Below are positions 5,808-64,000 of a stretch of DNA of 64,000 nucleotides, one piece after another (within the stretch, counting starts at the first letter, position 1; each line of letters starts with the position of its first letter). The DNA comes from Podarcis melisellensis. Taxonomy: Eukaryota. The position numbers and the translations under genes were made by a program. The stretch lies in the NCBI GenBank assembly GCA_964234715.1, contig OZ174279.1; one strand, 5' to 3'. Under the pieces are notes generated by a model that ran no database searches, was not told the origin of the DNA, and worked only from the letters and a program-made list of their open reading frames with translations.

Positions 5808-6805
5808 ACCTCCTTGTGATCCTTCAAAACTTCTCTGGACCACCAGGGATCCTCTGCAGTGACATGGGCACTGTGAAAGAGGGCAGAAACCAGGGGACTG
5901 CCTTGCATCAGTGCAAGGGCCTTTCACCTATACAAGAACTAGTTTCAATCCCAATCTATGTTCTCTCCTGTAGGTGCATGTTCTTTCCCCCCTATAATCA
6001 GGTCGACACCTTATCTAAAACATAACATGCTGAAGATCCATCCAGCATCTCTCTGTTGTGTTAGCATGAAGAGCAAGTTCTTGCCTTGATGTAATATTTG
6101 AACCCCTACCTAGCAGTGCTTTCTGCACTACATTGACATAATTAGTAATTCCATTCCTGGATTTGCATCAAAATACACTACAGATTGGCCTGTTACCTGA
6201 AAACAGCTGCTCTTCACATTGCCTTTTACCTGGCAGCAGCCAGCCTCGATCATTAGCTGAGGGCCAATGTAAATGTTACCTATTCCAAATGGGACTACCC
6301 CAAAAAAAAAAAAAAAAGCTTTCACTCACAGTGGCATTCCACACGGTGGGGGCAATATTTCAAAGTCTGTCACCCCAAGCTTTAGTGGCATTGCACACTG
6401 TGGGTGGTGGCAGACCTTGGGGTCTCAAATTTCAATGGTGCCCTGTGCAACACAAAAATTCAGTGTTCCCCGCCTCTCACACTACATTCCAAGTTACAGT
6501 TGTATCATCTCCTGGGGCACACGCGAGGCTCTGTTCCAGGTGCAACCGAACCTGCCATGCTCCCCTAAATCCACCTCTGCTGTGGAAAAGTGAAGGAAAA
6601 TAACAGATTTCAGAAAGCAAGTGTCCATGAGTGCAAAATGCCCAAAGTGTCCCAGCCTGGCCAATAACTGCCATGGTGACATCTTCATTGGACTGCAATA
6701 AGCAGGTAAAAGATTGGTCGCTTGAGGAAGCAAAGCTGGAGAGATCCTATCTAGGAAAGAGCAGTCTGTGGCATTTCAGATGAGGTAGAAAAATGATTAA
6801 TGATA

Positions 6806-7131
6806 NNNNNNNNNNNNNNNNNNNNNNNNNNNNNNNNNNNNNNNNNNNNNNNNNNNNNNNNNNNNNNNNNNNNNNNNNNNNNNNNNNNNNNNNNNNNNNN
6901 NNNNNNNNNNNNNNNNNNNNNNNNNNNNNNNNNNNNNNNNNNNNNNNNNNNNNNNNNNNNNNNNNNNNNNNNNNNNNNNNNNNNNNNNNNNNNNNNNNNN
7001 NNNNNNNNNNNNNNNNNNNNNNNNNNNNNNNNNNNNNNNNNNNNNNNNNNNNNNNNNNNNNNNNNNNNNNNNNNNNNNNNNNNNNNNNNNNNNNNNNNNN
7101 NNNNNNNNNNNNNNNNNNNNNNNNNNNNNNN
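6806..7131. other. Assembly gap (326 N)
   Basis: Run of n characters. Confidence 1.
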
Positions 7132-7631
7132 TTGTTCCCAGTTAGGGTTTGGTGACAATAATAGACTGAAGAAAACTCCCAAGAGGAATAGTGTGATTCC
7201 CACTTCAAGTGTATAAATGACCATCGTCCTCCCAACTTTTTAAGAAGCAATCATACACCCCAAATTGGTTATTCTAACATCTTTGTACTGTCATGTTCTG
7301 TCTTCATCCCTGTCAAAGCATTCCTGACACTCAGTGGTGATTCAGATTTACTGAGCCAAAGCCTCTATACTGGCAATAACCACCATCTCGGGTGAGGAAA
7401 AGGAGCAGAACAGGATACAGAGCTTTTATGTGGCATAGAATTGAGAGGACAGAGGGCGATTCTGATGAAGACAAGACGGCACATCCTCCTAAGGCCCTTT
7501 TCAGCTATGGAGATAATTGGGGAAAGCATATGTGTATTGTAGCAAGCAGCCATACCCATTTGAAATAATCTAATTAACGAGGAGCAAAGCAGGATAGCTA
7601 TAGCTATGCCAGCACAAGCTGCTCTATGTGC

Positions 7632-14671: not shown

Positions 14672-15849
14672 ATCCTTTTTGAGGTGATGTATTTTATTGA
14701 TTGTGCACCATGGATGACTCTGTATTGCCTTCTTGTTTTTTATGGCATTTCCCCTTCACTTTATAGCATGGAATCCAAAGATATAAACACTTAAAACATA
14801 TGTAAATTTAAACTACTGTGCTCCTCCTTTTTTAAAGAAAAAGTAAAAGTTTGAGTGGTGATTTGTGCTTATTTGCATTCTTTATATTATTTCATACAGA
14901 ATATATCTTATTTCAGATAAAGTGTAAGGAGTTACTCTCTCCCCTTTTCCTCAAGAGTTCTTGCACTTCTGCAAACCTTGGGGTTAACCTGATCCTGGTG
15001 AAACTTCCCCCTTGTCTGCTGCTGCTTGCTTGGCTACATAAGCAATGGTACTCAGTGCCTTAGTGTTGGGAATAGGGGCAATGATACACTGATGTACTTG
15101 TTTTGCCTTCCACATGAAGGCTGGCGGAATCTGATTCCATGTAGCAACTGCTCCACACTAAACGTACTGCAGTGCAGTGAGCTTGCCATAGCTTGTAATT
15201 ACATGCTTCAGAATACAAATTTGTCCAGCTCTTAATACCCTGCTGTGTTATGAACTGAATGACCACCAGCCAAGTTCTCTGCTGGCTCAGAAAGCAGAAT
15301 GTGATTTTGTAGCATGTGTGGTCACTGTTCTCCAGCAGACCAGGTGCCCAAAGCCTGCCATTTTGTAGGGTCATGTTCTGTAATCTGAAACCCGTCGCTA
15401 TCTCTGAAAGGTTTTAGATTGCTGTGAAATTACATGAACCACAAAGCCAGCTAACTTGTAGGACTTTTTCATATTCACCCTTCGCTCTCAATGAAACTCT
15501 CGTCAGTCGCTGGGAACTATGTAACCAGACCAGCTGCCCAATTTAGATTGCTTTGGTTTGGCATGTATAGTTTCCATTTGGGCCGGTTCTCTTGATTGCT
15601 CCATGCAAATATTTTATGTAGTTGCTGTAATCCACTTGATCTAGAAAGCTCTCTTGTTGCTGAGGGTGTCTGCTTGGGGAGGGAGGAAGCAGCCATCTGT
15701 CACTGCTAGTGCTGAGAAATCTCAGGAAGCTATATGATAAAGCACATGTATGTAACACTACGGTCCACCTGTGTCAACATTGAGAACTGACAGAAAACAG
15801 AAAAAAATCCTTCCAGTAGCATCTTAAAGACCAACTAAGTTAGTTCTTG

Positions 15850-15887
15850 GTATGAGCTTTCGTGTGCATGCACACTTCTTCAGATAC
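15850..15887 (-). ncRNA. Minimal type-I hammerhead ribozyme (minus-strand copy)
   Basis: Exact reverse complement of 15909-15946. Confidence 0.78.
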
Positions 15888-15908
15888 ACTGAACCTATCT
15901 GTTTCAGT

Positions 15909-15946
15909 GTATCTGAAGAAGTGTGCATGCACACGAAAGCTCATAC
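15909..15946 (+). ncRNA. Minimal type-I hammerhead ribozyme
   Basis: In order: GTAT (stem I), CTGAAGA (core), A, GTGTG-CATG-CACAC (stem II), GAAA, GC, TC (UH cleavage site after 15942), ATAC (stem I). Stem III is reduced to the palindrome AGCT, as in the minimal hammerheads known from Penelope-like elements. Confidence 0.8.
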
Positions 15947-16540
15947 CAAGAACTAACTTAGTTGGTCTTTAAGGTGCTACTGGAAGGATTTTTTTTTGTT
16001 TTGACTATGGCAGACCAACACCGCTACCTATCTGTAACTGTCAGAAAACAGGTGAGCTTTACTCATTAAGAAGTCTTATGATTACTAAGCCAATCTGACC
16101 AAGCTGCCCATCACTAAACCCCACATCTATATTACAGGAGACCAGCAGGAATCTGTGGCAGTACCACATAATCTCACCATAGGTAACCCACGTAACAAGA
16201 TGGTCTACACATTTCAGCCATGGCATGGAATAGTCACTGAGGGTTTTCACACTGAGGCTTAAAGTGCCTTTGCAACTCATATATGAAATCTACACCATGC
16301 AAAAAGTGTTTCTGCTGGCCTTAAGGAAGCTGGCAGCAAAGGCTGGTAGTTACTTGGAAGAAAACCTGTTTGCTTTGAGTAGAAGAGAGCCATTTACCAG
16401 CAGGAACTGAAAAGGGATACATCTCAGTGGAGTATTGGACTGATGTGGCAGAAATAGGGATACAGTTCTACAACAGAACTGACTTTCAAGAGGCATGTGT
16501 CAAATTGCAGCATTAAGCCTTAATCACAGCTAAGGGTTTA

Positions 16541-17523
16541 CAGTGGTGCCCCGCAAGACGAATGCCTCGCAAGACGAAAAACTCGCTAGACGAAAGGGTT
16601 TTCCGTTTTTTGAGCTGCTTCGCAAGACGAATTTCCCTATGGGCTTGCTTCGCAAGACGAAAACGTCTTGCAAGTTTGTTTCCTTTTTCTTAACACCATT
16701 AATACAGTTGCGACTTGACTTTGAGGAGCAACTCATAGAACGCAGTGTACATAGTAGCCTTTTTTGAGGTTTTTAAAGACTTTGGTGATTTTTGAAGCTT
16801 TTCCAAAACTTCTTTTGCAGCCATTTAGTAAGTTAAGCTTTTAAAACTTTTTTTTGGGGGGGGGTGGATTTTGGGTTGGTGTGTTTGGAATTCAAGGACT
16901 TGGTGTTGGGGAGGGGTTTGCAAGAATCTGGAAGCTTGTGTGTTTTTTTCTGCATTTTTATGATTTTCTGTGACCATTGGGCCACTCTGCTGTTTTTTTA
17001 CAAAAAATTCTGGATTTGAATTTCTGTGTGCTGGGTGGCTGGGGGAACAGTTGGGGAGGGGTTTGCAAGAATGTGGAAGCTTGTGGTTTTTTTCTGCATT
17101 TTTATGATTTTCTGTGACCATTGGGCCATTCTGCTGTTTTTTTAAAAAAATTCTGGATTTGAATTTCTGTGTGCTGGGTGGCTGGGGGAACAGTTGGGGA
17201 GGGGTTTGCAAGAATCTGGAAGCTTGTGTTTTCCCCCCTGCATTTTTATGATTTTCTGTGACCATTGGGCCACTCTGCTGTTTTTTAAAAAAAAATCTGG
17301 GTTTGAATTTTGAAATGCTCTTTACAGTATGTGTGACTTTAAAGAGCACTTAATAAACTCTTGTTGTACCAAATTTGGCTTTGTTTGGACTTTTTTTGAC
17401 CATAGGAACGCATTAATTGATTTTCAATGCATTCCTATGGGATTTCGTGCTTCACAAGACGAAAAATTCGCTAGACGAAAAAATTCGTGGAACGAATTAA
17501 TTTCGTCTTGCGAGGCACCACTG
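16541..17523. mobile_element. Non-autonomous Tigger/pogo-like DNA transposon (983 bp) with internal tandem repeat
   Basis: TA|CAGTGGTGCCCCGCAAGACGAA ... TTCGTCTTGCGAGGCACCACTG|TA, with repeated subterminal CGCAAGACGAA motifs and many retained CpGs. Confidence 0.92.
16905..17309. repeat. ~144-bp tandem repeat, ~2.8 copies
   Basis: GTTGGGGAGGGGTTTGCAAGAAT unit starts at 16905, 17050 and 17193. Confidence 0.92.
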
Positions 17524-63384: not shown

Positions 63385-64000
63385 CCCTTCCAGTCGGGAT
63401 TCAGGCCTCATCATGGGACTGAAACTGCCTTGGTCACACTGGTTGATGATCTCCGGCGGGCTAGGGACAAAGGTGAGAGCTGTTTCCTAGTTCTGCTGGA
63501 TCTCTCAGCAGCGTTTGATACCATCGACCATAACATCCTTCTGGGCCGTCTTGAGGGGCTGGGAGCTGGGGGCACTGTCCTACAGTGGTTCCGCTCCTTC
63601 CTCCTGGGCCGTGTTCAGAAAGTGGTGGTGGGGGGTGAGTGTTCAGACCCCTGGGCTCTCACTTGTGGGGTGCCTCAGGGTTCTGTCCTCTCCCCCATGC
63701 TTTTCAACATTTACATGCAGCCGCTGGGAGAGATCATCAGGAGGTTTGGGCTGGGTGTTCATCAGTATGCAGATGATACCCAGCTCTACCTCTCTTTTAA
63801 ATCAGAACCAGTGAGGGCAGTGAAGGTCCTGTGTGAGTGTCTGGAGGTGGTTGGAGGATGGATGGCGGCTAACAGATTGAGGTTGAATCCTGACAAGACA
63901 GAAGTACTGTTTCTGGGGGACAGGAGGCGGAGGAAGGAGCGGACAGGAAGGAGCGTCTCCACCCCCATCATTCTGCCCGGACGCTGAGGTCCAGCGCCGA
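63385..64000 (+). mobile_element. L2 LINE ORF2 reverse-transcriptase fragment (5'-truncated, internally deleted, runs off the window)
   Basis: Uninterrupted frame with PFQSGFRPHHGTETALV, LLDLSAAFDTIDH, GVPQGSVLSP, YADDTQLY and LRLNPDKTEV. After ~63947 the sequence matches the L2 3' region at 26216 onward. Confidence 0.93.

Follow-up and report, generated by a model that had tools for sequence, protein, structure and literature searches.

A likely Penelope-like fold-back insertion with a hammerhead motif on each strand in a 64-kb stretch of Podarcis melisellensis

Introduction

The minimal hammerhead ribozyme of metazoan Penelope-like elements (PLEs), as described by Cervera & de la Peña 2014, combines a short helix I with a long helix II (PMC4209133). 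It is further marked by an unpaired base at 9/10.1, a G10.1-C11.1 pair, and a palindromic 15.2-16.2 segment (PMC4209133). The same study reported thousands of dispersed single motifs from truncated PLEs, as well as dual motifs on opposite strands, with reptiles among the genomes that carry them. Single motifs showed no cleavage, and dimers cleaved weakly (PMC4209133). At the level of whole insertions, Craig et al. 2021 list as PLE signatures 5' truncation, an adjoining inverted 5'-truncated copy, and a tail of 30-40 bp that is often found on one end only (PMC8557442).

How such insertions are made has been studied with Poseidon_Ac, the PLE of Anolis carolinensis. Frangieh et al. 2024 found that the Poseidon_Ac protein nicks and extends both target strands, that reverse transcription (RT) starts at two internal sites, and that the tail equals the stretch between these sites (PMC11167929). 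The Poseidon_Ac hammerhead requires the PLE protein for cleavage and is dispensable for insertion, and RNA-seq gave no reads that stop at its cut site (PMC11167929). In addition, Porath et al. 2017 identified Penelope as a massively hyper-edited repeat in lizard (PMC5625713).

Here, we analyse a locus in a 64,000-nucleotide stretch of Podarcis melisellensis DNA (hereafter the window) that carries two hammerhead motifs back-to-back on opposite strands. The original prediction, made from the letters of the window, saw two intact minimal hammerheads of PLE type that together form a potential self-cleavage site for transcripts of either direction. We find it likely that 15801-16035 is instead a recent retrotransposition product of a very abundant PLE family, namely a fold-back in which the hammerheads are passengers and are masked.

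Results

A 38-nt hammerhead string lies at 15909-15946 on the plus strand, and its exact reverse complement lies at 15850-15887, where the motif reads on the minus strand; the coordinates and the reverse-complement relation given in the original prediction were thus confirmed in the sequence. On the plus strand, the string parses as a minimal type-I hammerhead with a 4-bp helix I (GUAU at 15909-12 with AUAC at 15943-46), the C3-A9 core CUGAAGA (15913-19), and an unpaired, bulged A at 15920 between A9 and G10.1. Helix II follows at 15921-34 (GUGUG-CAUG-CACAC), with G15921-C15934 as the G10.1-C11.1 pair, and then come the GAAA of G12-A15.1 (15935-38), the palindromic GC (15939-40), and U16.1 and C17 (15941-42). 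The GC sits inside an A-GC-U at 15938-41, so that the palindromic 15.2-16.2 that a dimeric helix III needs is present. In the folded motif, UUC/GAA pairing across a 3x3 internal loop can lengthen helix I. All catalytic boxes (C3-A9, G12-A13-A14, A15.1/U16.1, H17) are present on both strands, and the parsing proposed originally (core residues, 4-bp helix I, helix II hairpin, and palindromic AGCU) holds on each of them. The predicted cut on the plus strand falls 3' of C15942, i.e., at 15942/15943, and on the minus strand 3' of the C at 15854, between 15854 and 15853. Both motifs are therefore intact, as claimed, but they are not two independent hammerheads; they are one motif and its inverted duplicate within a single inverted repeat.

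We searched for the motif with a descriptor of our own (4-bp helix I, CUGANGA, 0-1 bulge, helix II of at least 4 bp, GAAA, 0-6 nt, UH), which matched two sites in the 64-kb window, just these two, and none in 50 shuffles. Likewise, the 34-nt core with at most 3 mismatches was found in the window at these sites only, where 0 occurrences were expected. The Rfam hammerhead families (type I, type III, HH9, HH10, and II) gave 0 matches over 401 nt at either the gathering score or E<=10, so the hammerhead search that had been suggested as a check picks out both motifs alone with our descriptor and neither of them with the Rfam models. This blank was expected because the motif is without the helix III hairpin that Rfam hammerhead models require.

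Helix II and its loop (GTGTGCATGCACAC, at 15921-15934 and 15862-15875) together form a perfect palindrome of 14 nt. Pairing between two RNA copies would favour this site over the 4-nt helix III palindrome: the helix II duplex was calculated at -25.2 kcal/mol, vs. 2 x -4.1 kcal/mol for two hairpins, and this duplex builds no helix III. We know of no discussion of such pairing for PLE hammerheads.

Both motifs are contained in an insertion of 235 bp (15801-16035) made up of an inverted arm, a 9-nt junction, and a direct unit of 133 nt. The direct unit (15903-16035, plus strand) is the 3'-terminal part of the repeat family, as delimited by the edges of summed family depth. The inverted arm (15801-15893, minus strand) is the reverse complement of 15903-15995 and is without the last 33-40 nt of the direct unit. 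It ends at the mirror of 15995-16002, and the direct arm reaches 16035; these arm lengths define a one-sided tail of 33-40 nt (15996-16035, plus strand) that the right end has and the inverted arm does not. Between 15801-15893 and 15903-15995, there is one real mismatch, 15822 against 15974. Taken to its full extent, the inverted repeat spans 15794-15893 and 15903-16002 with 98% complementarity around the 9-nt spacer, and we infer that its extension to 15794-15800 is a 7-nt microhomology of the target end AAAACAG with the UGUUUU tract of the element. The insertion is flanked by a target-site duplication, the left copy of which (AACTGACAGAAAACAG, 15785-15800) is identical to the right copy (AACTGTCAGAAAACAG, 16036-16051) at 15 of 16 positions; the right copy was placed by the direct repeat and by the empty sites reported below.

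The junction between the arms (CCTATCTGT, 15894-15902, plus strand) consists of 9 nt that equal the last 9 nt of the element (16027-16035). However, from 15898 (TCTGT) onward, it is also element sequence in other family copies. Because these copies have 15898 onward preceded by a different conserved sequence, CCTA, 4 of the 9 bases, is the sole locus-specific part of the junction.

We compared this anatomy with what is described for PLE insertions. An inverted 5'-truncated copy adjoining a direct copy is present, as is a 30-40-bp tail on one end alone (the 33-40-nt difference between the arms), and so is a target-site duplication (16 bp) with an empty orthologous site. The motif, in turn, matches the published PLE hammerhead feature by feature (PMC4209133). 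The locus therefore very probably belongs to the PLE class, as the original prediction had proposed on the strength of its minimal type-I hammerhead; this assignment derives from the motif and the insertion anatomy rather than from a linked RT/GIY-YIG open reading frame (ORF). Read from the junction, the frame that crosses the motif stays open until a stop at 15954-15956, and about half of the family depth carries another letter at 15954. With the 42 aa between the stops of this frame as query, a word-index search of proteins of 23-73 aa brought up no candidate.

Some other features of the window should be mentioned here. Its sole RT fragment lies at 63430-63987 on the plus strand, open to the window end (185 aa, RVT_1 E 1e-26), and its nearest Atlas clusters are chordate reverse transcriptases of LINE type. 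By eye, the fragment looks like an RTE/BovB-type LINE that is unrelated to the hammerhead repeat. About 500 bp downstream of the insertion, at 16536-16663, a 16-18-nt motif (TGCYTCGCAAGACGAA) recurs in five degenerate copies at intervals of 16-37 nt, and these probably belong to another repeat. At 6806-7131, 326 consecutive N mark a gap or a masked stretch, and several mechanical ORFs at 6747-7250 that span it are meaningless. Finally, the target-site duplication ends in ...AAAACAG and is followed by GTGAGC (16044-16057), which resembles a 5' splice-site consensus; two RNA-seq runs of a close relative gave 0 reads on this flank and so no sign of an exon edge. The region had been called probably intronic in the original prediction, and no exon was found close to the insertion.

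Sequence data from related organisms show the site without the insertion. In a 921-nt contig of organism B (X4) and a 2,201-nt contig of organism F (X12), 15784 is joined straight to 16036, which is the exact empty site. Compared over 15650-16190, both contigs hold a single copy of the 16-mer and show 0-1 flank differences. By contrast, the runs of organism A held 0.88-0.89 of the sampled words of 15600-16250, vs. <=0.75 for organisms B to F; the filled site is judged from these word shares. The insertion is real and sharply bounded and, since two very close relatives have empty sites, it is young or still polymorphic.

The element occurs once in the window, and the family beyond it is very large. 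In two relatives, the element has matches at >=85% in 7,915 and 14,876 contigs, respectively, and its summed depth is 10^4-10^5 times the unique-flank depth, a ratio that should not be taken for a copy number. This family depth climbs at about 15897-15915 and drops off at about 16036-16040, and the flanks of family copies are heterogeneous beyond 16038-16040. Many copies run 5' of 15898 into conserved sequence (agreement 0.61-0.91), indicating that the family is longer than the present copy. Loose ends with heterogeneous flanks occur at about 15996-16003 and 16038-16040. These positions are compatible with two classes of 3' end, a picture that is blurred by variation in the length of a T run. 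Moreover, among the joints listed, at least 15 connect left-arm to right-arm positions at other coordinates (169 further joints were recorded), so other family copies are also fold-backs, with their turning points elsewhere. Exact-pattern scans of metagenome contigs and viral contigs yielded no outside copies of the motif, and a full-text literature search for its sequence yielded no match.

Within the motif (15909-15946), the DNA variants at >=5% among the rows shown were 15934 C>T, 15935 G>A, and 15942 C>T, each at <=25%. The first two belong to one CpG, and 15935 G>A gives G12A in 13-20% of depth; 15942 C>T equals C17U. High-frequency, partly transversional subfamily changes all lie downstream of the motif (15950, 15954, 15969, 15989, 15998, and 16022). 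Even so, the density of variable sites was alike in and outside the motif (3/38 vs. 7/89 among the rows shown, with 20 further), and no compensatory base pair across family copies was seen among these rows. The pattern weakly suggests that source elements may have kept the motif while individual copies decay neutrally.

We analysed two stranded RNA-seq runs (X23 and X24) of organism B, about 12% of each of which was read; organism B is without the insertion. The unique flanks of the insertion received 0 reads in either run. On the element itself, there were about 1,350 reads per run, of which 97% continue into unlike sequence, and the two orientations were about equal. These family reads are passive transcription of many copies. 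At the predicted cut (15942/15943), no end pile-up was listed, with depth near 380 on each strand; the threshold for listing was a fifth of depth, which leaves room for low-level cleavage. RNA depth in these family reads of organism B likewise shows no step at the cut site. One candidate signal on the minus strand, 5-6 molecules with starts at 15851 and 15853 in one run, where depth was about 24, was rejected as noise, as it lies one base off the predicted cut, did not appear in the second run, and has a blank mirror site at 15x the depth.

Family RNA also carries strand-specific A>G changes between 15935 and 15975 that reach 34-46%, vs. <=0.6% in DNA contigs. The most frequent were at 15960 (148/434 in X23 and 162/355 in X24) and 15971 (142/464 and 144/377, respectively), and others in X23 were at 15945 (67/364) and at 15938, the core A15.1 (53/351). 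These counts are from one read orientation; the other showed about 0-3%, and mirror T>C changes appeared in the opposite read orientation. Such changes are the mark of double-stranded RNA that undergoes A-to-I editing, here at the level of the family. Because the RNA source is without the insertion, both masking and editing at this locus are read across from the family. The T run at 15989-15997 was also one base shorter (at 15990) in 12-20% of RNA reads, vs. about 0.3-1% of DNA contig depth, which could be explained either by transcribed copies unlike the bulk of the family or by a homopolymer artefact.

Folding predictions bear directly on whether the motif could form at this locus. The minimum for RNA of the insertion is a 93-bp hairpin at -170.7 kcal/mol, and a hammerhead-compatible fold lies 69.7 kcal/mol above it. 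For the isolated 133-nt unit, the hammerhead-compatible fold lies only 1.9 kcal/mol above the minimum free energy, with a pairing probability of 0.88 for helix II and 0.06 for helix I; a UUCAG/CUGAA hairpin competes and ties up part of the core. As read from the sequence, the antisense arm is transcribed before the sense motif in either direction, and co-transcriptional folding would therefore also favour the mask. Because the motifs are on opposite strands, no transcript of the locus holds two sense copies, and so no helix III dimer can form in cis. A trans AGCU/AGCU duplex was calculated at about -2.5 to -3.9 kcal/mol. With each motif predicted to be hidden in the 93-bp hairpin, cutting at this locus is very unlikely.

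Discussion

In contrast to the original prediction, our results do not support a working self-cleavage site at which the sense hammerhead cuts transcripts of both directions, a reading that we regard as very improbable. It draws on the intact core residues on both strands, on the isolated 133-nt unit, which comes so close to a hammerhead fold, and on the Poseidon_Ac motif, which does cleave when the PLE protein is present (PMC11167929). Yet, at the locus, the antisense arm comes first whichever way transcription runs and can pair over all 93 bp, leaving the hammerhead fold at +69.7 kcal/mol. Cleavage as dimers joined through the palindromic stem III, which the original prediction cited for PLE hammerheads in general, fares no better, given that no partner is available in cis and that the trans helix III would contribute just -2.5 to -3.9 kcal/mol. 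Single minimal hammerheads are inactive in vitro (PMC4209133), and cleavage failed in 8 of 9 dimer elements from frog. The family reads, with no end pile-up at 15942/15943 at about 380 per strand and 0 reads on the flanks, also speak against cutting, and a like negative has been published for Anolis (PMC11167929).

The remaining alternatives concern what the insertion is rather than what it does. It could be that the 133-nt unit is a non-autonomous, retrozyme-like element whose RNA template was tandem or circular and which PLE enzymes moved in trans, as opposed to a 5'-truncated autonomous PLE. The unit is preceded by the same 9 nt with which it ends, as though copying had gone beyond a single unit; one contig has a joint that goes back from 15987 to 15909; and retrozyme consensus sequences of reptiles average 176 bp and derive from pLTRs. 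Still, we judge this unlikely, as the locus has no tandem array and holds one direct unit with an inverted copy, fewer than two head-to-tail units. Most other copies extend 5' of 15898 into a conserved stretch that differs from the end of the unit (with 87-91% agreement among RNA reads), which makes the family longer than 133 nt, and just 4 of the 9 junction bases are locus-specific. A host-used RNA gene, with the hairpin as a precursor of miRNA or endo-siRNA, is more doubtful again, to the point of being highly improbable. Family RNA is edited as double-stranded RNA, and Rfam miRNA models do align, e.g., MIR1222 at 73.2 bits (E 2e-16), but all the scores, those of further families included, are below gathering (73.2 vs. 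90 bits for MIR1222, and 48.2 vs. 100 for mir-3149). Moreover, the models come from unrelated families and match both strands equally, which is a generic response to a long hairpin; the flanks are without RNA reads; and the insertion is absent from two close relatives and hence is not conserved. Assembly error, finally, is a fair concern where tandem and inverted PLE structures are known to cause trouble (PMC8557442). However, the clean 16-bp target-site duplication agrees with the precise empty sites, the word shares of organism A (0.88-0.89) stand above those of organisms whose site is empty (<=0.75), and fold-back joints recur in independent short-read contigs, so that we give an artefactual fold-back almost no credence.

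We therefore return to the insertion as a recent PLE retrotransposition product and consider how it may have arisen. The product would consist of the terminal ~133 nt of the element, kept in direct orientation, with the first 93 nt of this unit attached head-to-head as an inverted copy. The hammerhead would then be the normal terminal motif of the family, and its presence on both strands would stem from inverted duplication during insertion. Most likely, the two target strands were both nicked and then served as primers for reverse transcription, in the way known in vitro for the Poseidon protein of Anolis. The right cDNA would have started at the element end (16035), possibly with 3-4 nt of microhomology, and the left cDNA at UGUUUU, an internal site 33-40 nt further inside the RNA that offers 7 nt of microhomology. 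This offset would account for the one-sided tail. Both cDNAs would have been extended to about 15898-15903 and joined there. A brief switch of template may have left the additional CCTA, with which the junction comes to match the final 9 nt of the element. The same structure would also result if one cDNA had snapped back on itself, and a single locus does not separate the two routes. A transcript of the locus would fold into the 93-bp hairpin and thus be a substrate for ADAR editing rather than for self-cleavage. Inverted Alu pairs are ADAR substrates of this sort. Since both arms hold an uncleaved motif, hammerhead cleavage would not have set the template ends, in agreement with the findings for Poseidon_Ac (PMC11167929).

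A broader reading is that the fold-backs of the family as a whole are the genomic footprint of symmetric, two-strand-primed reverse transcription by a dimeric PLE particle, with the family still active, a main source of ADAR-edited double-stranded RNA, and the bearer of a self-silenced ribozyme. We put this forward tentatively, as a possibility that we hold to be somewhat less probable than even. If it is true, the absence of the insertion from two near-identical relatives would mean that the family is still active, and the footprint would provide in vivo support for a mechanism so far seen in vitro alone.

More immediately, the locus represents an already described class of repeat that has thousands of copies, and silence of its ribozyme motifs is almost certain. 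It shows very recent activity of the family in this lineage. The absence of PLE minimal hammerheads from birds and mammals, taken with the editing of Penelope in lizard (PMC5625713), points to a chordate host that is probably a squamate reptile. As a sharply bounded example with a precise empty site, the insertion is well suited to the study of inverted PLE structures and of the one-sided tail. It also offers a caution: because the insertion itself provides the antisense mask here, the context of an intact hammerhead core has to be considered before it is counted as an active ribozyme in genomes of this kind.

The essentials of both the structure and the motif class are already published. Like the minimal hammerheads of PLEs (PMC4209133), the motif is of type I with a 4-bp helix I, a possible 3x3 loop, and a closing UUC/GAA stem, and it shares with them the long helix II, the one unpaired base, G10.1-C11.1, and A15.1-U16.1 around GC. 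It differs in that the two motifs are 21 nt apart inside a fold-back, vs. 100-700 bp in that study, and in that helix II and its loop are perfectly palindromic over 14 nt. Compared with complex PLE insertions with pLTRs (Arkhipova 2006; PMC8557442), all three signatures are found here, but in a miniature of 235 bp that has no ORF and whose inverted copy mirrors nearly the whole direct copy.

The layout CUGAGGA-U-helix II-GAAA-CG-UC of Poseidon_Ac, compared by eye, is like that of our motif, and the distance from the cut site to the RT start or 3' end is 82-89 nt in Poseidon_Ac and 93 nt here (15942 to 16035). The sequences themselves are not obviously alike, with short resemblances by eye only, and the Poseidon_Ac ORF starts at helix II, whereas the frame here is open from upstream and stops at 15954-15956. 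Non-LTR retrozymes (Cervera & de la Peña 2020, PMC7229834; Li et al. 2026 preprint) are likewise short, ORF-less units of a PLE terminus with a type-I hammerhead; unlike them (PMC7229834), the present locus has no head-to-tail array, and its family extends further 5'. Lastly, inverted Alu pairs and lizard Penelope (PMC5625713) resemble this family in forming double-stranded RNA from repeats with clustered, strand-specific A>G changes. Whereas an Alu hairpin is built from a pair of elements, here one insertion provides both arms.
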